Part shown: in pieces, positions 5,836 to 63,200 of the stretch
How positions within the stretch are numbered: position 1 is the first letter of the stretch
Layout of the letters: every line of letters starts with the position of its first letter
IMG/VR virus record: IMGVR_UViG_3300042879_006196
Coordinates: 62,001 to 126,000 of that record
Reading direction: 5' to 3' (one strand)
DNA length: 64,000 nucleotides
Notes under the pieces: model-generated
The model's input: the letters and a program-made list of their open reading frames with translations, nothing else
Database searches by the model: none
Told to the model about the DNA's origin: nothing
Position numbers and translations under genes: made by a program

Positions 5836-6093
5836 ATGGTTAAGAACCATAAAATCAAAAAAAGCAAAGGCAAGGTAACCATCCTCCCTGAAGCTTCTTT
5901 CGTCGAACGACTTGAACTGAAAGGCAATAACCTGAAGTTCAAAATGAAATCAGGTGATAGCGTATATTCTACCGTTTTGAATCCTGAAAACATTTCAGAA
6001 TTGCTTACCGTAGCAACCGAAGGCGGTAGCCTTGGCACTTTTTATAATTCCGTTGTAAGGAAGTTGCCGATAGAAAAGGTAGCAACCTTCTAG
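5836..6093 (+). CDS. KTSC-like small protein
   Basis: Leaderless ATG; ELL.VA..GGS.GTFYN..VR resembles the KTSC C-terminal motif. Confidence 0.55.
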   Translation: MVKNHKIKKSKGKVTILPEASFVERLELKGNNLKFKMKSGDSVYSTVLNPENISELLTVATEGGSLGTFYNSVVRKLPIEKVATF

Positions 6094-6385
6094 ACAATTT
6101 AGGGGATAAATTCCCCTATTCCATTTTTTCCAGTTTTAACAAATTCTAGACAGAATAGGGGATAAATTCCCCTATTCCATTTTTTCCAGGTTTAACACAA
6201 TCTGAATTATAATGTATATACAGATTGTGGGGTGGGGTTTTTATTTTGCTATAGATAGCGAAAGGGGCACCTTTTTTTATTTTCAGATTGTGTCGTAGCC
6301 TATATATAGGGAGGGGGGGGAGGTTTTTCTCACACAATCTGACCCCCCCTTCTTTTTTCTAGGCCCCTCGTTTACACCGACACTA

Positions 6386-6503
6386 CACAATCTAAAAACC
6401 ACAATCTGAGAATCACAATCTAAAAACCACAATCTAAAAACCACAATCTAAAAATCACAATCTAAAAACCACAATCTGAGAATCACAATCTGAGAATCAC
6501 AAT
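6386..6503 (+). repeat. 14-bp tandem repeat with CACAATCT core, 8 full copies plus 1 partial
   Basis: CACAATCT at 6386, 6400, 6414, 6428, 6442, 6456, 6470 and 6484; partial at 6498. Confidence 0.95.
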
Positions 6504-6858
6504 TTTTTAGTTTATTTTTTTTATTCTCGGATCATAGGGGGGGTGTTTAAATTTAGGGGGGGTGTTTTAAAAAGGGTGTATAGATATATATACATATAGG
6601 GGTAAATTTTCGTATAATTAATAATGGTATACACGATTTTTCTTTTTCTAGCTATATATACAAATCTTTGTTTACTAGAAGCCTTGATACAATACAAAAC
6701 TTTTGTTTCTCGCTTAGGGTCATATTTAATGATTAAATATTTAAATTTCTTATCGTGGTTAAATTTCTTTACATACACAATCTGTCTTTTAAAGGGATCA
6801 CATTTGATAAATTTTTGATTAAAAAATAATTCCAGAAACACTGTTTTATGCATTTCCC

Positions 6859-6891: not shown

Positions 6892-6909
6892 ATTTAGTAA
6901 TTTAAGATT

Positions 6910-8466
6910 GTGTGGTATAGATATTGCAGATTAATTATAGCTGGCAAAGAACATATAATTAAAAAGATCATTGGTTATTTTAGAGAACAAGGGATTGGAC
7001 AAGTTGACTTAGATAATCTCCAACACAATCTGAATACCTTAGATAAGAATAATTTATTACCAGCGAGAATAGAACCTAGAAAAGATGGTGTATTTTTTGG
7101 TGATAGATTGTATGAAGATTTTTTAGAATTTCAAGAAATAGTGGATGGATTATATGGAGAATATAAATTAAGACAAAAAACAAAAGAACAAAAGAAATTA
7201 AGAGAAGAAAAAATAGAATTTGTTCCAGGTAAAACATCTGTTTATCCATGTAATAGTGTAAATGATGCGATCAAATATGGGGTTGGTACAGATTGGTGTA
7301 TTTCTCAACCTGGTAATGGAAATTATGATTCATATAGATCCGACTATCAATCTACATTTTATTATGTACAAGATAACACTAGACAATCTGATGATCCTTT
7401 ATCTAGAGTAATGGTGGATATACAAGCAAATGGTGTTGTCAAACTCACTGATATAAATAATACCACTGGTACAATAGCTGAATTTGGTACAGATTGGAAA
7501 AAGTATTTCGAGTATTTGGAAAAAAGTGGTGTAGATATTTCTCAATTTGTTAATAAACCTTTGACACAAGAAGAGATAGAAGAAAATAAGTTGATTGGTA
7601 AAGAAATAAATGATTTGGAGAAATTTGAAAAATTACCATTAGAATATAAATTCAAATACATTGGTCGTGGTCATTTATTAACGACAAAACAATTGGAGTC
7701 TATTATTAATCTTCAATCTGTTCATAGCAATGATGTAAAAAATACATTGATAAAACATTATTTAAAAACAGGAAGATCTTTACCAGCAATTCAAAAATTC
7801 ATTTTATTTGAAAGCAATCAAGGATGGAGAACAACATACATAAGAAGTAGAAAAATAGTAATAGATCAAATTAGAAAAAATTTATTGGATGACGACGAAG
7901 TAGCTCGCGAATTTCTAGATGCTGATGAAAGGGCTCTTTATGAAAATCCATTGAAATCAACAAATATTGTTGTGAAAAATATTGAAGATTTTGATTTTTT
8001 ATTAACTAAAGGTGTAAGTTTAAATCAGTTTAATTGGTCTAGTGTTTCTCAGATTCGTAATTTATCTGAAGATTTTATAAGAGAATATAAAGATAAAGTG
8101 GATTGGCTTGATATTTCTACTTATCCAAGATTATCTGAAGATTTTATCAGAGAATTTCAAGATAAGGTGTACTGGTGGATAATTTCTCAATATCAAACAT
8201 TATCTGAAGATTTTATAAGAGAATTTCAAGATAAGGTAAAATGGGGAACAATTTCTTACACACAGGAATTATCTGAAGATTTTATAAGAGAATTTAAAGA
8301 TAAGGTGGATTGGGAGAAAATTTCCAGATATCAAAAATTATCTGAAGATTTTATAAGAGAATTTAAAGATAAGGTGGATTGGTATTATATACGGTGGAAC
8401 GAGAATATTTCCGATGAAACCAAACGCAATCTGCAAGCACAAGGATTTCCTATAAAAATTTACTAA
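6910..8466 (+). CDS. MWY-start protein with KYGxGTxWC domain and 5 C-terminal 23-aa Trp repeats (paralog 1)
   Basis: LSEDFIREFxDKVxWxxISxxQx units at a 69-nt period (8062, 8131, 8200, 8269, 8338). Confidence 0.9.
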   Translation: MWYRYCRLIIAGKEHIIKKIIGYFREQGIGQVDLDNLQHNLNTLDKNNLLPARIEPRKDGVFFGDRLYEDFLEFQEIVDGLYGEYKLRQKTKEQKKLREEKIEFVPGKTSVYPCNSVNDAIKYGVGTDWCISQPGNGNYDSYRSDYQSTFYYVQDNTRQSDDPLSRVMVDIQANGVVKLTDINNTTGTIAEFGTDWKKYFEYLEKSGVDISQFVNKPLTQEEIEENKLIGKEINDLEKFEKLPLEYKFKYIGRGHLLTTKQLESIINLQSVHSNDVKNTLIKHYLKTGRSLPAIQKFILFESNQGWRTTYIRSRKIVIDQIRKNLLDDDEVAREFLDADERALYENPLKSTNIVVKNIEDFDFLLTKGVSLNQFNWSSVSQIRNLSEDFIREYKDKVDWLDISTYPRLSEDFIREFQDKVYWWIISQYQTLSEDFIREFQDKVKWGTISYTQELSEDFIREFKDKVDWEKISRYQKLSEDFIREFKDKVDWYYIRWNENISDETKRNLQAQGFPIKIY

Positions 8467-8504
8467 TTTTTGAACAAATCATATTTTTTATCGTATAATA
8501 ATAA

Positions 8505-8579
8505 TGCGGGGTGGAGCAGAGGTAGCTTGTCTGGCTCATAACCAGAAGGTCGTGGGTTCAAATCCCTCCCCCGCACCCA
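8505..8579 (+). tRNA. tRNA-Met(CAU), initiator-like scaffold, CCA encoded
   Basis: TGCGGGGTGGAGCAG..GGTAGCT.GTCTGG-CTCATAA-CCAGA..GTGGGTTCAAATCCC..CCCCGCA-C-CCA. Confidence 0.9.
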
Positions 8580-8580
8580 A

Positions 8581-8654
8581 GCTCCGATCGTCTAGCGGTT
8601 TAGGACATCGCTCTTTCACGGCGAAGATCACGGGTTCGAATCCCGTTCGGAGTA
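8581..8654 (+). tRNA. tRNA-Glu(UUC), no encoded CCA
   Basis: GCTCCGA/TCGGAGT acceptor; TCGCT-CTTTCAC-GGCGA anticodon arm; ACGGG-TTCGAAT-CCCGT T arm. Confidence 0.93.
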
Positions 8655-8677
8655 ATTAAAAAAGATTGGAATAAAAT

Positions 8678-9424
8678 ATGTATTTACCTTTATTAGCTTT
8701 TTCCCTTTTCACACAATCTACTTTAGATGACACACAATGTAGAAAGGCATTAAATGAAATTCTCCCTATGATGCGCACAACCAATGCTATGAGTTTTAGA
8801 TTAGAGGGGGAGAATGAATACAAGGGGTTTTTTACAAAATATTCGGGCAGTTTTAAATGGTTCAAAAATGAATCTGTGATAAAGTCAGAGTTAAAGTTAT
8901 CGCGAGATCAGATTGGCTTACAAAGAATTGTGGCTGATGGTAAAAAGATTTGGGCACACAATCTGCAAAGAAATGAATATACAGTGGCTCGTTATTCTTT
9001 AGAATTATCTGTGGGCGAAGATTACATGAAAAGATATATAAATGGTGTAAAGTACCCTGTGCTAGGGATGGGGCAACATTTAATGACACTTGCAGATCAG
9101 GTAGGTTTTGTATCACCTTCTCTCAAAGACTGGATTGGTGGTATTGAGTGGCAGGGAAAATTAGAAATAGATAAAAATAATTCTTTAAGAATTGTGAAGA
9201 GAATTTATCAGATTGTGGCTGATTATCGTTATGTGGTTTGGGAGCTTGAATCATTTGATGAGGGTGTCACATTTAATTTTTCAAGCATAAAGATTTACAA
9301 TAAAAGTTTTGATGGGTCAACCACCACCACATATCTTTATTTGGACGATTGTGTGGGTGCGGATCATTTAGGATTTAAATTTGTTCCTCCATCTGGCAGC
9401 AAAGTATTATGGATAAAAGATTGA
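8678..9424 (+). CDS. Secreted LolA/DUF2092-like beta protein
   Basis: Hydrophobic N-terminus; IVADGKKIWAHN...NEYT and C-terminal FKFVPPSGSKV motifs typical of the LolA fold. Confidence 0.6.
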   Translation: MYLPLLAFSLFTQSTLDDTQCRKALNEILPMMRTTNAMSFRLEGENEYKGFFTKYSGSFKWFKNESVIKSELKLSRDQIGLQRIVADGKKIWAHNLQRNEYTVARYSLELSVGEDYMKRYINGVKYPVLGMGQHLMTLADQVGFVSPSLKDWIGGIEWQGKLEIDKNNSLRIVKRIYQIVADYRYVVWELESFDEGVTFNFSSIKIYNKSFDGSTTTTYLYLDDCVGADHLGFKFVPPSGSKVLWIKD

Positions 9425-9460
9425 GAAGGAAGATTTTTTCTCATTCTATAATACTATACT

Positions 9461-9883
9461 ATGAACAAACACAATCTATTAAACAAAATAGCTTCAATTG
9501 CTACAGAACTCGACGTAAAAGGTTTCACAAAGGAAGCAAAGACCTTGGATAATGTGTTAATTAGAGTGGCGGATATTAATCCTGAAGAATATTGGGATAA
9601 AGAATGGAGAAGAGAGTTTCGTGAAGAAGAAAGAACTATTGTTCCAACAAAAAAAGTTTGGGAGTATGTTAAAAGCGCACACACTAAAGAATTAGAATAC
9701 GCACTTGAAGGTGGCGGCTTAGACGTGAAAAATTTTGCTGAATTTTGCTGGTCTTTAAAAGATGAAAATTTAAACAACATGATCAAAAATAGCCCAGATC
9801 TTAATTGGGCATGGTTGGAAGAAGCATTTATAGATCATTTGGAATATATTCAACATTCTAAGTTTGACTCAGAACCAGAATGA
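9461..9883 (+). CDS. Hypothetical protein with shared N-terminal IASxATELD.KG..KEA tag
   Basis: ORF; tag shared with the genes at 9976 and 20778. Confidence 0.8.
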   Translation: MNKHNLLNKIASIATELDVKGFTKEAKTLDNVLIRVADINPEEYWDKEWRREFREEERTIVPTKKVWEYVKSAHTKELEYALEGGGLDVKNFAEFCWSLKDENLNNMIKNSPDLNWAWLEEAFIDHLEYIQHSKFDSEPE

Positions 9884-9975
9884 TTAGGAGGGAGGCTAAT
9901 TTTACGATTAAGCTTCCCCCGAAAAGGTGCGCTTTTTCTAACGTAAATCAATTTTCACATTTAAAGGAGAAAAAA

Positions 9976-10551
9976 ATGAACAAACACAATCTGCTAAAAC
10001 GAATTGCTTCTGTTGCCACAGAGCTTGATATGAAGGGTTTCACTAAGGAAGCAAAACATTTAGATTCTATGCTTTTAAGGTTGGCTATGGATGATGACAT
10101 GCCTGAAATTGAAAAAAGTATTGATAGTGTCACTCCAACTTTTCAAGATTGGGAAGGTTTAAATGCCTTGAATGGTATTTTGATTAGTGTGCTTGGCGGT
10201 CGTAAAGATTTAGACAAAAATTACTATCATGGTGTTGACATTATCATGGATCTTGTTAATGATATTTTCACTGAGTTGAAAAACTTTAATAAATTAAATG
10301 CTAATGAAAATTTTGAACAAAAACAAGATTTGGGCATGGAAATAAAAATGCTTCTTGACACTGTTAGGGATGAGACAAAAGCTTTAATTAAAGAATTTAG
10401 AATTACTTTAGATATGGGTAGGCAAATAATTTTGGATCATGCTTATGATTTAGTGGACAAATTCAAAGATACAATAGATGATTTGTTGGATATGAGCTCT
10501 CTTGACTTTTTACCTAAAAATGATGAACAGTGGCCTGACAAACTGTATTGA
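9976..10551 (+). CDS. Hypothetical protein with shared N-terminal tag (start moved from 9880)
   Basis: AAGGAG SD before ATG 9976; MNKHNLLKRIASVATELDMKG. Confidence 0.8.
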   Translation: MNKHNLLKRIASVATELDMKGFTKEAKHLDSMLLRLAMDDDMPEIEKSIDSVTPTFQDWEGLNALNGILISVLGGRKDLDKNYYHGVDIIMDLVNDIFTELKNFNKLNANENFEQKQDLGMEIKMLLDTVRDETKALIKEFRITLDMGRQIILDHAYDLVDKFKDTIDDLLDMSSLDFLPKNDEQWPDKLY

Positions 10552-10590
10552 TTAAAAGGAAGAGCACCGCGCAAAATTTAAATATAGATT

Positions 10591-12891
10591 GTGTGGTATA
10601 GATATTGCAGATTAATTATAGCTGGAAAAGAACATATAATTAAAAATGTTATTAATTATTTTAGAGAACAAGGGGAGTCTGAAGTAAATCTAAATGAAAT
10701 CTCACAGAAACTAAATGTTTTAGATAAATCACAAAAATTGCCAATTATTGAAAGAAGAAAAAAAAGTATTTTTTTTAATAATCAAGAATTCACCAAATTT
10801 CTTGACTTTTCAGAAAAAGTGGATCGTTTATTTTCTGAACATTTACGAAATGAAAAAACAAAAGAACAAAAAAAAATACAGAAAGAAGAAAAAACAGAAT
10901 TCATTCCAGGCAAAATATCTGTTTATCCATGCAAAAATGTAAATGATACAATCAAATATGGCGCTGGTACAAGTTGGTGTGTTTCACAGCCTGGTAATAA
11001 CATGTATGATAGTTACAGAAATCAAAGTGCGTCCACATTTTATTACATTCAAGATGGAACAAGAGATTCTAGTGATCCATTATCAAGGGTAATGTTAGAT
11101 GTACAAGATGGCGATGAAATTACATTAACTGACACAGATAATGACACTGGCGCTATAGCTGAATTTGGCACAAATGTAGATGCTTATTTAGATTATTTAG
11201 AAAACAATGGCGTAAACACTGCTCAGTTTGTCAATAAACCTTTGACAAATGAGGAAAGAGAAGAATTTCGAATATTAGGTCAAAGAAATAATGATTTAGA
11301 ATGGTTTGAAAATTTAAGTTTAGATTATAAATTCAAATATATTGGAAGAGGTCATCGTTTAACAGATGAACAGCTTTCATCAATTATAAATTTAGAATCT
11401 GTTGACACAAAAAAGATTGCATTAGAATTAATTAATGATTATGTTAACACAGGCTTAAATTTACCTTTAAATCAACAAAAAATTCTATTTGAAATTAATC
11501 CACAAATTCAAAAAACCTATAAAAGAAGAAGAGCAATTGCAATTGAAGCAATTAAGAAATATTATTTTAATAATACATATGAATTAAAAAATTATGCTTT
11601 ACAAAATAAAGATCTTGAATTGATTGATTCAATTATTGAAGAAAAAGGTATTGAAGCATTCAAAAATGCGAGGGCAGCTCAGCCTGTAATTGAATATTTA
11701 TTATCAAAAGGCTTGGACCCTAGTTATGTGAAATGGCAAGACATGTATTTAGAAAAATTATCAGAAGACTTTATAATCAAATACATCAACTTTTTAGACA
11801 TTAAGCGTATATCTCACTATCAAAAACTATCTGAAGATTTTATAAGAAAATATTCAGATCTTGTTGATTGGCGAAATATTTCATATTTTCAAAAATTGTC
11901 AGAAAATTTTATTGAAGAATTTAAAGATCGCGTAGATTGGCAAGAAATTTCAAGCAGACAAATATTATCTGAAGATTTTATAAGAAAATTTCAAGATAAG
12001 ATAGAACAAAGCAGATCATGGTCTGAAATTACACAATATCAAAATTTATCTGAAGAATTTATGGATGAATTTCAAAATAAATTAGATTGGGAAAAACTTT
12101 CAGATTACCATGAAAATAGAAAATATGGACAGAAACTTTCAATTGAATTTCTTTTAAGGCATAAAGATAAAATTGATTGGGAAACATATTCACGTAAATA
12201 CGGTGCCAATATCGCTGAGGAATATTTGAGAGCTCTCAAATATTATATACACTGGGATAAAGTAAGTTATCATAATGTATCTGATGAATTTTTGTTTGAA
12301 TTTGAAAATTATATAAATTGGAAAAAAGCAGCGAGCACAAAAGAAAATATCCCTGAAATTTTACTCCGAAGACACGCTGATGATTTAAATTGGTATCATA
12401 TTTCAGCTTTCCAAACATTATCTGAAGATTTTATAAGAGATTTTGCTGATCGTTTTAATTGGGTTTTTATTTCTCAACATCAAAAATTATCTGAAGATTT
12501 TATAAGAGAATTTAAAGATAAGGTGGATTGGTATTATATTTCTGAATATCAAACATTATCTGAAGATTTTATAAGAGAATTTCAAGATAAGGTAAAATGG
12601 GGAACAATTTCTGTATATCAAAAATTATCTGAAGATTTTATAAGAGAATTTCAAGATAAGGTAGTTTGGCATTTTATTTGTAGATATCAAACATTATCTG
12701 AAGATTTTATAAGAGAGTTTCAAAATAAGGTATATTGGGCAGAAATTTCTCAAGATCAAAAATTATCTGAAGATTTTATAAGAGAATTTCAAGATCGTGT
12801 AAAATTGCATTATTTATTGCGAAATGAAAACCTTTCTGATGAAATCAAACACAATCTGCAAACAAAAGGTTATCAAATAAAACATTTTTAA
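10591..12891 (+). CDS. MWY-start Trp-repeat protein (paralog 2, about 15 repeats)
   Basis: Same N-terminus and KYGAGTSWC domain as paralog 1; long repeat array. Confidence 0.9.
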   Translation: MWYRYCRLIIAGKEHIIKNVINYFREQGESEVNLNEISQKLNVLDKSQKLPIIERRKKSIFFNNQEFTKFLDFSEKVDRLFSEHLRNEKTKEQKKIQKEEKTEFIPGKISVYPCKNVNDTIKYGAGTSWCVSQPGNNMYDSYRNQSASTFYYIQDGTRDSSDPLSRVMLDVQDGDEITLTDTDNDTGAIAEFGTNVDAYLDYLENNGVNTAQFVNKPLTNEEREEFRILGQRNNDLEWFENLSLDYKFKYIGRGHRLTDEQLSSIINLESVDTKKIALELINDYVNTGLNLPLNQQKILFEINPQIQKTYKRRRAIAIEAIKKYYFNNTYELKNYALQNKDLELIDSIIEEKGIEAFKNARAAQPVIEYLLSKGLDPSYVKWQDMYLEKLSEDFIIKYINFLDIKRISHYQKLSEDFIRKYSDLVDWRNISYFQKLSENFIEEFKDRVDWQEISSRQILSEDFIRKFQDKIEQSRSWSEITQYQNLSEEFMDEFQNKLDWEKLSDYHENRKYGQKLSIEFLLRHKDKIDWETYSRKYGANIAEEYLRALKYYIHWDKVSYHNVSDEFLFEFENYINWKKAASTKENIPEILLRRHADDLNWYHISAFQTLSEDFIRDFADRFNWVFISQHQKLSEDFIREFKDKVDWYYISEYQTLSEDFIREFQDKVKWGTISVYQKLSEDFIREFQDKVVWHFICRYQTLSEDFIREFQNKVYWAEISQDQKLSEDFIREFQDRVKLHYLLRNENLSDEIKHNLQTKGYQIKHF

Positions 12892-12900
12892 TTTAAGATT

Positions 12901-14598
12901 GTGTGGTATAGATATTGCAGATTAATTATAGCTGGCAAAGAACATATAATTAAAAATGTCATTAATTATTTTAGACAAAAAGGCGAAATTGAAGACAATC
13001 TAAATGAAATTTATCGCAAGCTTTTGGATCTTGACAAATCCAACAAAATACAAAATATTGGAATAATAGAAGATAAAGTTAATTTTAATGATAATTCATT
13101 CAATAATTTTATAGATTTTTCAGAAAAAATAGATGAATTACATACAAATTATTTTTGGTTGAAGCAACAAGAAAAATTAAAAAAGGAACAAAAAGAATTA
13201 CAAAAAAATGAAATAGAATTTGTTCCAGGTAAAATATCTGTTTATCCATGTAATGATGTAAGTGATACAATCAAATATGGAGCTGGTACAAGTTGGTGTA
13301 TTTCTAGACCTGGTAATCGCATGTATGATTCATATAGATCCAGCAATCAATCCACATTTTATTATGTGCAAGATGGAACTAGGCAATCTGATGATCCATT
13401 ATCAAGGGTAATGATAGATAGGCAGAAAAATGGTGTTGTCAAGCTCACTGATATTAATAACCGTACTGGCACAATAGCTGAGTTTGGTACAGATTGGCAA
13501 GCATATTTTGACTATTTGGAAAGCAAAGGCGTAAAAACTTCTCAATTTGTTAATAAACCTAGAACACAAGAAGAAATTGAAGAGACTAAAAAATTAGGCA
13601 CAAAAAAAGACAATTTAGTATGGTTTAAAAACTTAACAAACGATGAAAAATCAAAATATATTGGAAGAGGTCACCTATTAACTAATAAACAATTAGAATA
13701 TTTATTATCAAGAGATGATATAGGCAAATTATTAATTCCTCAATATTTAAATACTGGTGTTAGTTTGCCTCCAAAACAAAAAAAAATGTTATTTTCTAAC
13801 AAACAATATGAAAATACATATTATAAAAATATTGAAATTGCACATCAAGAAATTAAAAAATACTGCTTTTCAAAACACAGTGATAATATTGCTTGTGAGT
13901 TAGAAATTTTAATAAATGCATTAGAAACAAATCAATTTGAACTTGTAGAAGAATATCAAAATAGAATTAATTTGTTAGACATTGAAAACTTTGAACCCAT
14001 TCCTAATTTTTATGATGATGAAGATGATGAAGATGAAGATGATGATGAAGATGATGAAGAGGTTATTTTTATCGACGGGCGAGCTTATACTTTTAATTTG
14101 AGTGTTAATATTTCAGTGGAAATGGCTGAATTTTTATACGAAATAGGAGCTGCTGAAGACAATTTAAATGAGATCTGCCACATGCGAGGATTATCTGAAG
14201 ATTTTATAAGAGAATTTCAAGATAAGGTGAATTGGAGGGCAGTATCTGAATATCAAACATTATCTGTAGATTTTATAAGAGAATTTCAAAATAAGATAGA
14301 AGAAACAAGATCTTGGGATAGAATTTCTGGATATCAAAAATTATCTGAAGATTTTATAAGAGAATTTAAAGATAAGTTGAGTTGGGATAGAATTTCTGGA
14401 TATCAAAAATTATCTGAAGATTTTATAAGAGAATTTAAAGATAAGTTGAGTTGGGGGAAAATTTCTTATTTCCAAAAATTATCTGAAGATTTTATAAGAG
14501 AATTTCAGGATAAAGTGAATTGGGAGTATATACAGAGCAACGAAAATATATCTGATGAAACCAAACACAATCTGAAAGCGCAAGGATTTCCGATGTAA
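12901..14598 (+). CDS. MWY-start Trp-repeat protein (paralog 3, 5 repeats, acidic tract)
   Basis: Same architecture; DDEDDEDEDDDEDDEE tract. Confidence 0.9.
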   Translation: MWYRYCRLIIAGKEHIIKNVINYFRQKGEIEDNLNEIYRKLLDLDKSNKIQNIGIIEDKVNFNDNSFNNFIDFSEKIDELHTNYFWLKQQEKLKKEQKELQKNEIEFVPGKISVYPCNDVSDTIKYGAGTSWCISRPGNRMYDSYRSSNQSTFYYVQDGTRQSDDPLSRVMIDRQKNGVVKLTDINNRTGTIAEFGTDWQAYFDYLESKGVKTSQFVNKPRTQEEIEETKKLGTKKDNLVWFKNLTNDEKSKYIGRGHLLTNKQLEYLLSRDDIGKLLIPQYLNTGVSLPPKQKKMLFSNKQYENTYYKNIEIAHQEIKKYCFSKHSDNIACELEILINALETNQFELVEEYQNRINLLDIENFEPIPNFYDDEDDEDEDDDEDDEEVIFIDGRAYTFNLSVNISVEMAEFLYEIGAAEDNLNEICHMRGLSEDFIREFQDKVNWRAVSEYQTLSVDFIREFQNKIEETRSWDRISGYQKLSEDFIREFKDKLSWDRISGYQKLSEDFIREFKDKLSWGKISYFQKLSEDFIREFQDKVNWEYIQSNENISDETKHNLKAQGFPM

Positions 14599-15822: not shown

Positions 15823-18474
15823 TTAGATTGTGTTAAATTTTGTTAAGTTTTTTTTCATCCACTGAAGGGCTTCAGCTTTATCGTTAAACTCTCCATTCAG
15901 CTGTGCTTTCCAGGCTTCATCTAACATATCTTTGATATCTCTTCCTTTCAGATTAGTGTTTTCAACAACATCATAGCCATTAATAAACGCCACTTCTCTT
16001 TGCATTCTATTTTGCAACCATTCTAATGCTGTTTCTCTGTTTTTCATTCTTGGATCATGATCCAAAATCATTTTTCTATGTTCTTTCAAAATTTGCCCGA
16101 TTATTGGACCACCTTTTTTCGTGTAAACCATAATATCTCTACCTTGTAAAAGATCTTGTGCTTTATCTTCAAATACACCGAGCTCATTTGCTTTTTCAAT
16201 CATTGTTTTTGCTTCATCTGGTAGTTTTTTTTCTAAAGGTGGTCTACCTGAATGATCTGCCTCAATTAAATAAGAAAGCATTTTAAGATTTGAAGGATAA
16301 ATTTTTTCTGCTAAATTTTTCACAAAAGAATCTTGTTTGGAAGTGTTTGAGTGATGAATGTGTGCAAGATGGTATTCTACCAAAGGTACCACTTGATCTA
16401 TCACTTTCTTGGGAGCCCCTATTGATTCTAAAAACGCTCTAGCTTTAGGTCCGCCTTTTTCTTCATGACCATGAGATGTAATTCTATCTTTTCCTTTTTT
16501 ATTAGTTACAGCTGTCGTTTCAGGTTTTGCAAAATCATGTGCAAGAGCCGCATAAATTAACACTTCTCTTTGTTCAGGAGAAAGATTTTCTCTGTCAGCA
16601 ATTCTAGCTGCTTCATTCATAACATGTGCAGTATGAACGTCCACGCTGCCCTCAGGGTGCCACTCCGAATCTTGTGGGGTATCTTTCAGATCATGTATTT
16701 CAGGGAAATTAGCAGACCAACCAGTGGTATAAAGAAAATCTAATGCCTTTCCTGGTTCAATACCTTTTGTTACAAGTTTTTTAAATTCTTCATAAATTCT
16801 CTCTTTAGGGAGATGCTGGAATTCTTCTCTTATAGATTGTGCTAATTCAGCTGTTTCAGGTGCAATATCAAAACCAAATCTAGATGCAAATTGCATGCCT
16901 CTTAAAACTCTCAATGGATCTTCAGCAAAAGCATCAGATGTATGTCTTAATATTTTATTAGTAAGATCTTGTCTACCGTTATATGGATCCACTATTTCAT
17001 GCGTGATAGGATCATATGAAATAGCATTAATTGTAAAATCTCTTCTAGCAGCAGCCTCTTCAGGTGTAAGATCTGACCTCACCTCTACATTAAAATCTTT
17101 ATGCCCCACTCCTGCTTTAGAATCAAGTCTGGGTAATGAAAAATCAAAATCCATACCATCTTTGCCAACAAATTTAATCACTCCAAATGATTGTCCAACA
17201 AGATCTGCTTTACCATACTTAGACAAAATCTGATTCAATTCATCATAATTAAGCCCATACACTTCAAAATCAATATCCTTTGGTGATTTACCTAAAATGG
17301 CATCTCTTACAGCTCCTCCAACAACAAGTGCCCTACCTCCTGAATTTGAAATATCAGAAAGCAAATCATACACATAATCTGGAAGTGATATCAGTAAATT
17401 TTGTTTTTCACCGTATTTTTTCAAATTAAAAGATACATTTCTTACATAAGCCAATTTATGAATTTTCCTCTCAACATAATCTACGTATTCTTGTAAATAT
17501 ATAGCATTAGATCTTTTTGTTTCTGGATTAATTTTATTTTTTTCTGATTCCAATGCGGACAAAAGATTTCTATAGGCTTCCAATTCGCCTATAGAATATC
17601 TTTCTTTTTCAAAAATTTTATATGCATCTGAAATAATTTTTTTGACAGGTTCAGGCATTATAATTATTGGTTTAGTTCCTTTTTGATTGAAGATATAATC
17701 GTATAATCCTTTTTTAAGGAAAAGCAGATATTCTTTTCCAAAATAATCTCTATGAGTATAATTTGGCAAATATTGTCTATGTTTTAAAACTATATCATTA
17801 ATACAATATTCAATGACATCATGCACAGATTTTCTGACAGATTGATTGTGAAGCTTCGAATAATTTTCTACGAACTCTACATTTAGGATATTGTTGTGTT
17901 TCTGAATTAAGCCTTGTAAATTAGCCCTTGCTTCTTCAGGTGATTGATAATAATAGGGAAATTTCTGCTGATCTTCTCTAGAAAGTTGGCTTTGATGTTT
18001 TTTATCTGTTCTATCTAAAAGTTTTTCATTTCTCCACCAATCTGTTTTGCTTTTTTGTTTACTAATAACATGGGTAATTTCATGAGCCATGTTAGATTTA
18101 ATATAAATTAAATCTTTATTTTTGTCCGATGCAGCATTAATGCCAATTTCTTTGTCAATAGTGGCTTTTGCGTGTTGTTTTTTATTTTTATCAAAATAAA
18201 TAAATACGGGTATTTTTAAATCTAAGGCTTTTGACTCTAACACACAATCTAAAAATAAAGTTTGAATCTTTTGATAAATATCACCCCATAAAAGAAGTTT
18301 TTTTTCATAAGCAACAGTAGAAGTATCAGTGGCATTTTGTAATTCTTCTCTCATAATTGATTCTTTTTCAGAGATCTCTAAAAAAGCTGGATTTGTAATC
18401 ATGGCATATATATTATTTGCCACTGAATCAAAATTATCAAAGTATTGTGTTACTGAGCTATACTTATACCACAC
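15823..18474 (-). CDS. cca: CCA tRNA nucleotidyltransferase with HD domain, fused to an N-terminal HEXXH domain
   Basis: VGGAVRD..DIDFE, RRDFTINA, EDPLRVLR, HPEG..H and HDFAK motifs; N-terminal MWY and AHEITH. Confidence 0.9.
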   Translation of the reverse strand: MWYKYSSVTQYFDNFDSVANNIYAMITNPAFLEISEKESIMREELQNATDTSTVAYEKKLLLWGDIYQKIQTLFLDCVLESKALDLKIPVFIYFDKNKKQHAKATIDKEIGINAASDKNKDLIYIKSNMAHEITHVISKQKSKTDWWRNEKLLDRTDKKHQSQLSREDQQKFPYYYQSPEEARANLQGLIQKHNNILNVEFVENYSKLHNQSVRKSVHDVIEYCINDIVLKHRQYLPNYTHRDYFGKEYLLFLKKGLYDYIFNQKGTKPIIIMPEPVKKIISDAYKIFEKERYSIGELEAYRNLLSALESEKNKINPETKRSNAIYLQEYVDYVERKIHKLAYVRNVSFNLKKYGEKQNLLISLPDYVYDLLSDISNSGGRALVVGGAVRDAILGKSPKDIDFEVYGLNYDELNQILSKYGKADLVGQSFGVIKFVGKDGMDFDFSLPRLDSKAGVGHKDFNVEVRSDLTPEEAAARRDFTINAISYDPITHEIVDPYNGRQDLTNKILRHTSDAFAEDPLRVLRGMQFASRFGFDIAPETAELAQSIREEFQHLPKERIYEEFKKLVTKGIEPGKALDFLYTTGWSANFPEIHDLKDTPQDSEWHPEGSVDVHTAHVMNEAARIADRENLSPEQREVLIYAALAHDFAKPETTAVTNKKGKDRITSHGHEEKGGPKARAFLESIGAPKKVIDQVVPLVEYHLAHIHHSNTSKQDSFVKNLAEKIYPSNLKMLSYLIEADHSGRPPLEKKLPDEAKTMIEKANELGVFEDKAQDLLQGRDIMVYTKKGGPIIGQILKEHRKMILDHDPRMKNRETALEWLQNRMQREVAFINGYDVVENTNLKGRDIKDMLDEAWKAQLNGEFNDKAEALQWMKKNLTKFNTI

Positions 18475-18522
18475 AATCTAGTATTAAAAATTTTTAAGTT
18501 ATATACCTCGTATTTAAAATAT

Positions 18523-61873: not shown

Positions 61874-63200
61874 GTGAACTACCCAAGGGCTAAAGACCCT
61901 TGGGCTTCAAGTTTCACAGCCTCTGCTACTGCAGACGACTCCACTTGTTTTTGTTTTATATCCGAATTAGTTCCTAACCCAGATAGATTGTTTAAACCTT
62001 GGATGAGAATATTTTTACTTGCATTTACATCTCTGTCGTGTGTTGTTCCACAAGACACACAAATCCATTCTCTGTCTTTCAAGGTCAATTCTTGATTTAT
62101 CCAATGGCAACTATTACACATTTTACTGCTTGGAAAGAATCTGTCTATTTTAACAATAGTTTTATCATTCCAAGATGCTTTATATGAAAGCATATCGTAA
62201 AATATTCCTAATCCAACATCTGAAATAGATAATGCTAATTTATGATTTTTCATCATGTTTTTTACAGCCAAGTCTTCTACGCAAATAACATCGTGATTTT
62301 TGATTATATCTGTGGATACTTTATGTAAATTGTCTTTCCTTCTGTTTGCTACTTTTTCATGGATTGTAGCTACTATTTTTCTTTGTCTTTCTTTCTGACC
62401 ACTTCCTTTCATTTTTTTTGAAAGTTGCCTTTGTTCGTATTTTAGTTTGCTTAATGATTTCCTTAAACACTTAATATTTTTGTATTTAGTTCCATTACTA
62501 AGAATCGCTAAATCTTTCAATCCTGTATCAATTCCTACAGATGAATTTGTTTTCTCTAATTCTGGATGTTCTACTTCACAAGTTATCGAAATATAATATT
62601 TTCCTGTTGTTGTTTTAGTTATTGTTCCATTAAGAATCCTTCCTTTTATTGGTCGATGAATTACGATTTCTATGCCTTTTTTAAACTTGGGAATAGACAA
62701 TTTTCCATCTTCGATGGCTAAAGACTGAGGAACATGAAACGATTGTTTACCATTCTTTTTCTTATATCTTGGGAACTTTGCTAGTTTTCTGAAAAACCTA
62801 TTGTATGCAATGTCTAAGTTTTTTAAAGCAGATTGTAGTGATTGTGAATTAACTTCTTTCAACCAAACTAAATTTTTTTTTAATTCTGTTAAAGAAGAAG
62901 CATTATCATAATAATTTAATGAATTTCCATTATTAAGATATTCTTCTTGTCGTTCGTTTAGAAATCTATTAAACACAAATCTCATACACCCAAAATGCTT
63001 CGCAAGAAGCATTTCTTGATTCTTTGTTGGATGTATCCTATATTTATATGATTTGTGTATAGTTTTCATCTATAATATAATATACAAGATATTTTATGCA
63101 ACTACCTTTTTTTTGATAATTTTTCAAAAAAATTGTGTAATATATTTATAATGAGCATTCATCCCAGCGGCTAAAGACCACTGGGTTTTCTGCTCACGAT
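61874..63200 (-). mobile_element. IS200/IS605-family (IS1341-type) element without tnpA
   Basis: Subterminal hairpins CCCAAGGG-CTAAAGA-CCCTTGGG (61882-61904) and CCCAGCGG-CTAAAGA-CCACTGGG (63163-63185); right end TTCAC at 61878-61874; left boundary approximate. Confidence 0.85.
61879..63069 (-). CDS. tnpB: TnpB RNA-guided endonuclease
   Basis: YKYRIHPT HTH, RuvC GIDTG / VEDL / DRDVNA, CNSC..CVSC zinc finger. Confidence 0.95.
   Translation of the reverse strand: MKTIHKSYKYRIHPTKNQEMLLAKHFGCMRFVFNRFLNERQEEYLNNGNSLNYYDNASSLTELKKNLVWLKEVNSQSLQSALKNLDIAYNRFFRKLAKFPRYKKKNGKQSFHVPQSLAIEDGKLSIPKFKKGIEIVIHRPIKGRILNGTITKTTTGKYYISITCEVEHPELEKTNSSVGIDTGLKDLAILSNGTKYKNIKCLRKSLSKLKYEQRQLSKKMKGSGQKERQRKIVATIHEKVANRRKDNLHKVSTDIIKNHDVICVEDLAVKNMMKNHKLALSISDVGLGIFYDMLSYKASWNDKTIVKIDRFFPSSKMCNSCHWINQELTLKDREWICVSCGTTHDRDVNASKNILIQGLNNLSGLGTNSDIKQKQVESSAVAEAVKLEAQGSLALG

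Follow-up and report, generated by a model that had tools for sequence, protein, structure and literature searches.

A jumbo-phage protein family with hypervariable tryptophan-repeat arrays on a nearly uniform DNA scaffold

A 64,000-nt stretch of phage DNA (the window), bases 62001–126000 of the 347,392-bp virus record IMGVR_UViG_3300042879_006196, carries three paralogous genes whose products end in arrays of a 23-residue repeat with a conserved tryptophan (Trp). The phage comes from lake-water metagenomes with sampling years 2020–2024, and its record is 99% complete by CheckV. The arrays combine a scaffold that is nearly uniform at the DNA level with a few hypervariable residues that turn over quickly from strain to strain. 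The large N-terminal module of these proteins, here called the head, is joined to other types of repeat array in its relatives. With moderate confidence we propose that a constant head and an exchangeable, diversifying, protein-binding array work together inside the cell, in host takeover or counter-defence.

Four paralogs were found in the 347-kb genome. Three lie in the window, all on the + strand and starting at GTG (MWYRYCRLIIAGKEH). The fourth, of 941 residues, is at genome positions 303189–306014; its N-terminus and C-terminal cap are as in the other three, and its repeats are mostly degenerate. Neither the repeat nor the N-terminal module was found in any further open reading frame (ORF) of the genome. 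The parts of the three window genes, in window coordinates, are these:

6910..8466, + strand: paralog 1, an ORF of 518 residues with the N-terminal module, five Trp units (residues 385–499) and the cap; the AlphaFold model has a predicted local distance difference test score (pLDDT) of 81.5 overall
6910..7944, + strand: paralog 1 N-terminal module (residues 1–345), in the AlphaFold model an alpha/beta core with the invariant Cys130 followed by a helical domain
8062..8406, + strand: paralog 1 array, five units of 69 nt; residues after the Trp are LD, WI, GT, EK and YY
8407..8466, + strand: paralog 1 C-terminal cap (ISDETKRNLQAQGFPIKIY) and stop codon; AlphaFold predicts a helix at residues 502–510
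10591..12891, + strand: paralog 2, 766 residues, with the N-terminal module, about 15 units and the cap (ORF and unit model)
11758..12114, + strand: paralog 2 older block, five diverged units including a 27-residue IEQSRSW variant
12115..12417, + strand: paralog 2 degenerate units, about four (residues 509–609), weak matches to the unit model
12418..12831, + strand: paralog 2 young block, six units with VF, YY, GT, HF, AE and HY
12901..14598, + strand: paralog 3, 565 residues, with the N-terminal module, an acidic linker, five units and the cap (ORF and unit model)
14014..14060, + strand: paralog 3 poly-Asp/Glu linker, a GATGAA-type repeat; the surrounding 60 residues have pI 4.05 and net charge −21
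14191..14547, + strand: paralog 3 array, five units with RA, IEETRSW-DR, DR, GK and EY (unit model)

Tandem Repeats Finder (TRF) places 69-nt arrays at 8062–8382, 11821–11997, 12385–12839 and 14313–14525. A hidden Markov model (HMM) of the unit counts five units in gene 1, 11 clear and about four degenerate units in gene 2, and five in gene 3, one of which has a four-residue insertion. An earlier note on this DNA had described three paralogs with 5, about 15 and 5 units, sharing an N-terminal domain and a NEN-ISDETK-NL-AQGFP cap. The ORFs, TRF and the unit HMM agree with the counts, and the pattern goes far beyond chance; the two common end domains are present in the fourth paralog as well.

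The Trp-repeat array is predicted with high confidence to be an alpha-solenoid, as the earlier note had supposed. In the AlphaFold model of gene 1, based on 29 homologs, the array has pLDDT 93–98; each unit forms one helix at positions 3–8 (helix A) and one at positions 15–21 (helix B), and a capping helix follows the array. Variability was first scored in 15 young units, namely the five of gene 1, the six at the end of gene 2 and four of the five in gene 3. Positions 14, 16, 17 and 20 show 6–10 different residues each, which bears out the wide variation seen after the Trp, and positions 10, 21 and 23 are moderately variable. The pattern holds family-wide in 486 distinct units from 118 proteins. 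Entropy there is 3.6–3.95 bits at positions 16, 17 and 20, 2.0–2.8 bits at positions 14, 21 and 10, and below 0.6 bits at each of positions 1, 2, 3, 5, 6, 9, 15, 18 and 22. W15 is conserved in 96–99% of the units.

On a helical wheel W15, I18, S19 and Q22 fall within one 100-degree arc of helix B, with positions 16, 17, 20 and 21 opposite. From this the variable residues are expected to line up in one strip along the stack, which would be surface-exposed. Their placement on one face, which the earlier note had offered as a test, is supported by the wheel drawn on the DSSP string, not measured on coordinates. The charged positions E3, D4, R7 and E8 of helix A, expected on its outer side, are nearly invariant; therefore the variability is not general to non-core positions. 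Among solved structures the array has only generic helical-repeat resemblances. Neither the proteins nor profiles gave a significant match in sequence searches of the PDB, and Foldseek against the PDB with both domains gave nothing at E ≤ 0.001. The VIA wide fold search gave Z ≤ 6.5; the best resemblances of the array to solved structures, 6ndz_B (Z 6.0) and 4o60 (Z 5.3), have Z values within the chance range of helical repeats.

Alignment of the unit DNA separates two age classes, the young units and the older, diverged first five units of gene 2. Codons 1–9 are essentially identical across the 15 young units, synonymous sites included. TTA is used in 15/15 young units, compared with 42% of Leu codons genome-wide, and TCT also in 15/15 (34% in genome codon usage). 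Two minority codons are nearly fixed: ATA in 14/15 (26% genome-wide) and AAG in 11/13 at codon 12 (16% genome-wide). Codon bias was rejected as the cause of the invariant 5′ part on these counts. The near fixation of minority codons indicates that the uniformity lies at the DNA level and is not due to codon bias or protein constraint alone. The almost invariant first 36 nt or so reported in the earlier note are thus a property of the young units, and do not extend to the older 5′ units of gene 2. In the same young units the variable codons are saturated, while the neighbouring codons 15, 18 and 19 are mostly the same codon. Between pairs of young units in the genome, the proportion of non-synonymous differences (pN) is 0.64 at positions 14/16/17/20, against a proportion of synonymous differences (pS) of 0.24 at scaffold codons.

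Individual units recur in different genes. The copies of the KWGTIS unit in genes 1 and 2 have an exact tract of 68 nt in common, and those of the DWYYI unit one of 61 nt; past their first 35 nt, the N-terminal parts of the same two genes have not a single identical tract of ≥30 nt in common. Genes 2 and 3, and several orthologs, contain the 27-residue IE..RSW variant unit. All three recurrences had been noticed before and hold up at this level. In paralog 3, units 2–4 include a near-perfect tandem duplicate.

Comparison of close orthologs shows how fast the variable residues change. pN and pS were computed by region for four close ortholog pairs, with pS taken outside the variable positions:

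Gene 1 and P0001: pN 0.034 at variable positions and 0.017 in the N-terminal part, pS 0.034; pN(variable)/pS 1.0, Fisher p = 1
Gene 2 and P0012: pN 0.102 at variable positions and 0.010 in the N-terminal part, pS 0.023; pN(variable)/pS 4.4, Fisher p = 1.5e-4
Gene 2 and P0014: pN 0.077 at variable positions and 0.020 in the N-terminal part, pS 0.053; pN(variable)/pS 1.5, Fisher p = 0.32
Gene 3 and P0017: pN 0.570 at variable positions and 0.083 in the N-terminal part, pS 0.140; pN(variable)/pS 4.1, Fisher p = 6e-13

Variable positions change 2–10 times faster than the rest of the protein between close orthologs. Measured against synonymous sites the pairs are divided: pN(variable)/pS is about 4 in two of the pairs, while the other two stay at 1.0 and 1.5. 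In amino-acid sequence, gene 2 differs from P0012 at 15/70 variable, 8/389 N-terminal (residues 1–389) and 4/160 scaffold positions. Orthologs that are about 80% identical overall have 24/35 variable residues replaced. Unit number also differs, from 2 to 14 among orthologs, and proteins otherwise identical to gene 3 have four units instead of five, lacking either unit 1 or unit 3. The unique parts of 10591–14598 are identical in three lake-water runs from 2020–2024; one lake-water run, labelled 'RNA', is probably DNA.

The head was searched as a profile of residues 1–345 against 1.84 billion representatives at E ≤ 0.001, which gave a family of 652 clusters. According to the ESM Atlas rows, phage (Uroviricota) make up nearly all members for which a taxon is recorded, and the family is apparently phage-only; the module was absent from the 50,697 GenBank phage records searched. 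The AlphaFold model of the head, made with a 96-sequence alignment, has pLDDT 92.2 and a predicted template modelling (TM) score of 0.84. It shows, in order, a helical N-terminus, a small beta element, a long helix, the alpha/beta core (109–215) and the helical domain (220–345). Cys130 is invariant, and Y142, R143, S148, D155, D170, T180, D181, N184, T186 and E222 are nearly so. The head has no convincing match to a solved structure, and AFDB clusters gave weak, low-TM matches only.

The relatives of the head carry a variety of arrays. Of 71 that were scanned, 28 have ankyrin repeats after the head, and single cases have LRR or DUF4116 repeats; the Atlas clusters of the head add LRV and WG-beta arrays. 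Trp units were found in none of 146 further head cluster representatives, apart from the ortholog of the fourth paralog. Since relatives join the head to ankyrin, LRR, LRV or DUF4116 arrays, the head is the constant part and the array is interchangeable. No other independent argument for the Trp array as a binding module is, in our view, as strong as this exchange on one head.

The head may be related to PcfJ of the Enterococcus plasmid pCF10, at most distantly. All four paralogs match one region of PF14284 (PcfJ-like), with a best score of 20.5 bits, below the gathering cut-off of 25. The matches come from 10/29 close family members, at E of 6e-4 or weaker, and from 4/96 sequences of the wider family. 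We also compared the head alignment (A5) by hhalign with an alignment of 26 true PcfJ proteins of pCF10-type plasmids, which is of low diversity (Neff 2.9). The probability was about 0.1, with 88 columns colinear and with a Cys aligned to Cys, an S/T-T-hydrophobic strand and a conserved Asn in the same order. Unlike in PcfJ, where a His precedes the Cys (HHCVG), the head has Trp or Phe at that place. A Foldseek search of BFVD with the head returned seven models named PcfJ-like, with probability 0.47–0.97 but TM of about 0.2. No solved PcfJ structure was found, and literature searches for PcfJ found no functional study. In pCF10 (L011, 15874–17984) the type PcfJ gene adjoins a gene of the Cas9 inhibitor AcrIIA9 family, and a DpnD/PcfM gene is near. 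This arrangement hints that PcfJ-like domains are part of anti-defence gene neighbourhoods.

From these data the paralogs can be pictured as a phage multigene family of modular, probably cytoplasmic proteins. The head of about 345 residues would supply a constant activity or docking function, and the C-terminal solenoid would recognise the target. L1, F5, I6, F9, V13, W15, I18, S19 and Q22 look like the core of the unit, and positions 14, 16, 17, 20 and 21, on the other side of helix B, would line up into an unbroken strip from unit to unit. The first 36 nt, near-identical among units, may provide the homology by which units cross over unequally or undergo gene conversion, both inside one paralog and across paralogs. 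Such events would alter unit number, move units and keep the scaffold uniform, and selection would maintain diversity among the strip residues. A UvsX-like recombinase encoded in the genome counts, in our view, in favour of an exchange of units. The most likely ligands of the strip are host proteins, or proteins of competing elements, met in an arms race; both the protein binding and this arms-race or counter-defence role are what we infer from the features above.

What the strip might bind was judged from its chemistry. The arrays are acidic (pI 4.7–5.3, net charge −8 to −16). At positions 16/17/20 the 486 units carry 418 distinct triplets, and at 16/17 they carry 206 distinct pairs; the residues enriched at these sites are Tyr (2.6-fold), Cys, His, Gly and Trp. 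Together the acidity, the triplet diversity and the aromatic-type enrichment argue against a base-reading code and for a surface that binds proteins or other ligands. By analogy, the enrichment of Tyr, Trp, His, Gly and Cys may be compared with that of protein-binding paratopes. Binding of nucleic acid by the arrays is unlikely. Of the family of recombination-diversified solenoid binders suggested in the earlier note, the solenoid, the one-sided, fast-evolving residues and the units in common are supported, and the nucleic-acid target is not: the arrays are acidic and no small code is seen among their triplets. The other target proposed there, host defence proteins, is a guess.

A more specific form of the nucleic-acid idea is a modular reader in the manner of TALE, PUF or PPR proteins, taking one base per unit through positions 16, 17 and 20. 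These positions are spaced i, i+1, i+4 like the residues of helix 2 by which PUF proteins recognise bases, the units are near-identical and each has a few variable residues on one helix, and tRNA genes and a CCA-adding enzyme lie nearby. The same acidity speaks against it, as do numbers of triplets and pairs far above what a four-letter code needs and the lack of a structural match to TALE, PUF or PPR, so that we regard such a reader as very improbable. Still harder to credit is targeted hypermutation, in which a diversity-generating retroelement (DGR) or similar mutagenic system writes the variable codons. Variability limited to a few codons in otherwise identical DNA would suit it, and a DGR survey found PcfJ-like domains upstream of the variable region in some target proteins of the candidate phyla radiation (CPR) (PMC5758913). 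DGR mutagenesis was nevertheless rejected, because no reverse transcriptase (PF00078, E ≤ 1) occurs across the 347-kb genome and all four bases occur in the variable codons (A 77, T 48, G 40, C 15); there is also no template repeat, and ortholog substitutions are not restricted to adenine-templated sites.

The arrays might instead be displayed on the virion, as receptor-binding accessory proteins that recognise the host surface like tail-fibre tips or DGR-diversified Mtd-type proteins, their variability being host-range adaptation. Receptor-binding proteins typically show diversifying selection on a binding surface, the CPR targets with PcfJ-like domains count in the same direction, and one weak BFVD match (probability 0.54) is a 'structural protein' of phage PA5oct. 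However, the genes lie among tRNA, CCA-adding and replication genes, and their relatives beside genes for Hsp70, FtsH, sigma factors and ribonucleotide reductase. No PHROG structural family is matched, and no signal peptide, fibre or trimerisation motif was seen by eye, no predictor being used. Since no structural module occurs among the neighbours, here or in relatives, an intracellular role is favoured and the virion location is judged unlikely. There could also be no adaptive diversification at all, the variable sites being unconstrained surface residues of a structural or spacer solenoid whose scaffold is kept uniform by recent tandem duplication and ordinary purifying selection. Surface residues of solenoids generally vary more than the core, and pN(variable)/pS of about 1–1.5 in two of the four pairs fits neutrality. 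Against this stand the two pairs in which pN(variable) is about four times pS, the near invariance of E3, D4, R7 and E8 on the expected outer side of helix A, and the saturation of the variable codons next to the mostly unchanged codons 15, 18 and 19. Aromatic residues are enriched at the variable sites, and the head recruits other binder repeats in relatives. A lack of adaptive diversification is accordingly judged improbable.

Several points weigh against the proposed constant head with a diversifying, protein-binding array. Positive selection is significant in only two of the four ortholog pairs, and the value for gene 3 and P0017 may be inflated by non-orthologous pairing of units (5 against 8). 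The differences in unit number between strains come from short-read assemblies, in which repeat collapse could partly explain them; the contigs of the public lake-run assembly over 10591–14598 break at every repeat, leaving these differences unconfirmed. The exposure of the strip is deduced from the DSSP string and helical periodicity, not from solvent accessibility. Neither a recognised catalytic motif nor a relative of solved structure was found for the head, so its 'constant activity' is an assumption. The literature searched holds no experiment on Trp-repeat proteins.

The repeat itself is not new. Its sequence places it in the tryptophan repeat gene family, named earlier but uncharacterised: tandem units of about 23 residues with a conserved Trp and LSE.F(I/L), similarity to annotated members and several paralogs in the genome are all present. 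The earlier note was correct that similar Trp repeats occur in large DNA viruses. Foldseek against AFDB clusters returned 'Tryptophan repeat gene family protein' entries (E = 2e-12 to 1.5e-10, 34–45% identity), and MSV205 of Melanoplus sanguinipes entomopoxvirus is among the cluster matches, with 42% identity. By tblastn, annotated genes of Bacillus phage BpSp match with 49.5% identity (E = 3e-27). The repeat was located at no fewer than 40 places in Listeria phage LPJP1, at least 36 in BpSp and at least 28 in Bacillus phage G, and also in Rak2-like coliphages. PHROGs matched families of unknown function (phrog_3532 at E = 1e-110). Pfam has no model for the Trp repeat, and the three window proteins have no Pfam match to ankyrin, LRR, HEAT, LRV or DUF4116 at E ≤ 0.1. 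Weak Pfam matches in the repeats (DarA_C, CYNS_N and others) were far below the cut-off and disregarded, and the PF08004 (DUF1699) labels precomputed on homologs were not reproduced by a direct Pfam scan.

With MSV205, AMV254 and the proteins of BpSp, G and LPJP1, the window proteins share the 23-residue unit, the conserved Trp and the LSE.FI motif, and with BpSp also the tandem arrangement of paralogs. They differ in carrying the 345-residue head. BpSp gp123–127 are five small tandem genes (140–200 residues) with the Trp-repeat family annotation, and AMV254 combines an F-box with Trp repeats (PMC7728225). Papers give no more than the name of the family, as for AMV254 and for gp556/560 of phage G (PMC12484599). 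The papers searched gave no description of hypervariable positions on a uniform scaffold. Within the sources searched, three things appear to be new: the quantified hypervariable residues on a DNA-uniform scaffold, the fast strain-to-strain turnover of these residues, and the fusion to a large phage-only head family with swapped binder arrays.

Better-known repeat systems offer partial parallels. TALE repeats of Xanthomonas effectors are likewise DNA-uniform tandem units in which a few variable residues set specificity and recombination alters unit number and order. Their units are of 33–35 residues, however, in a basic protein with a small DNA code at positions 12/13, whereas here the units are of 23 residues, acidic and with hundreds of combinations; the Pfam scan and fold searches gave no sequence or fold match to TALE. 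PUF proteins have eight three-helix repeats of 36 residues with a small triplet set, unlike the two helices and 23 residues here, and no Pfam or fold match to PUF was obtained for the window proteins. Short two-helix units in a solenoid with variable positions on one face are also found in ankyrin and designed helical binders of the DARPin type. The ankyrin unit is of 33 residues, not 23, and no Pfam ankyrin match was obtained. The poxvirus ankyrin/F-box (PRANC) host-range proteins and AMV254 resemble the window proteins as multigene families of large viruses that join a constant domain to a variable array. In the poxvirus F-box proteins the repeat array is taken as the substrate-binding part (PMC7728225). 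The likeness is architectural only, as the constant domain here is N-terminal and not an F-box. We know of no SCF ligase in bacteria.

The phage lacks close relatives in culture: the identity of its polymerase to any GenBank phage record does not exceed 36%. The window encodes a DnaE-like polymerase, DnaB helicase, RecJ, ribonucleotide reductase, the UvsX-like recombinase and three tRNA genes. The paralogs adjoin tRNA-Met, tRNA-Glu and a CCA-adding enzyme with an HD domain, with replication genes also around. This arrangement of tRNA, CCA-adding enzyme and paralog is kept in a related 101-kb phage contig. The neighbours of the ankyrin-bearing head relatives encode Hsp70, an FtsH-like protease, Ro60, sigma factors and NusG, and the Hsp70/FtsH-like/Ro60 neighbourhood possibly points to protein quality control or degradation. 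In two huge-phage contigs (L013, 4096–11159, and L015, 5763–9785) such relatives adjoin genes for Hsp70, an FtsH-like AAA protease, Ro60 (TROVE) and an IF1-like protein. Other features of the window are:

6906..6917, + strand: start-site DNA motif GATTGTGTGGTA with the GTG start codon inside; also at 10587–10598 and 12897–12908
9461–9883 and 9880–10551: two small adjoining ORFs of 140 and 223 residues between paralogs 1 and 2
15823–18474, − strand: CCA-adding/poly(A) polymerase-type nucleotidyltransferase with an HD domain and an extra N-terminal part of about 380 residues with no family match
61879–63069, − strand: transposase-family ORF (phrog_506, E = 2.5e-128)

The two small ORFs have in common a very similar stretch of about 37 residues (MNKHNLL..IAS.ATELD.KGFTKEAK.LD..L.R.A); in the second ORF the first residue of this stretch is an internal Met, at position 33 of the listed frame. 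Their place is taken by another full paralog in the related contig L010. From its phrog_506 match, the transposase-family ORF marks a mobile element within the jumbo-phage genome.

The start motif, (A)GATTGTGTGGTA, occurs at eight ORFs, among them all four paralogs and the CCA-adding enzyme. The further sites are at 18467–18478 of the window (− strand) and at genome positions 81446, 172154, 303185 and 309117. With up to two mismatches there are 176 copies in the genome, against 21–32 in shuffled sequences. None of the eight ORF starts has a Shine-Dalgarno sequence upstream. Given a common DNA motif without Shine-Dalgarno, the N-terminal MWY(R/K)(Y/F) is probably dictated by the DNA element, which is probably a promoter, a leaderless-start signal or something similar. 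The N-terminal MWYRY peptide was set aside as a targeting signal, being encoded by a motif common to unrelated genes.

Upstream of paralog 1, at 6090–6510 of the window, the core of this motif is densely repeated in both orientations, with inverted pairs CACAATCTG...CAGATTGTG and poly-G/C runs. Two 56-nt direct repeats lie at 6088–6197 and eight tandem CACAATCT(A/G)A(A/G)AA(C/T) units at 6386–6503. By its sequence the region looks like an array of binding sites, regulatory or origin-like. Elsewhere in the genome, at 14.4–32.7 kb and outside the window, about 70 copies of ATGATTAATACAGATTGTGTGGA(A/G) occur, all on the + strand and spaced by about 150–350 nt.

Among the unexplained expansions of genes in jumbo phages the Trp-repeat family is one of the larger; G, BpSp and LPJP1 carry dozens of copies. 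The present locus gives a testable model for it, a predicted two-helix, 23-residue solenoid with specificity at positions 14/16/17/20/21, and ties the Trp repeat to a large, apparently phage-restricted head family of 652 clusters, in which several classic binder repeats replace one another. Should the model be true, these proteins would be a widespread class of phage proteins directed at host or competitor proteins, and their arrays a compact natural scaffold for engineered binders. More tentatively, the family could be a natural retargeting platform, in which one head, possibly a Cys-based enzyme, is aimed at host or rival proteins by array swap and unit diversification. Such a platform would swap whole arrays (Trp, ankyrin, LRR, LRV, DUF4116) and, within the Trp arrays, shuffle and diversify a code of three to five residues per unit on the DNA-uniform scaffold. 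It would then be a recombination-based counterpart of DGR binders and of the F-box/ankyrin adaptors of eukaryotic viruses, operating without a reverse transcriptase.

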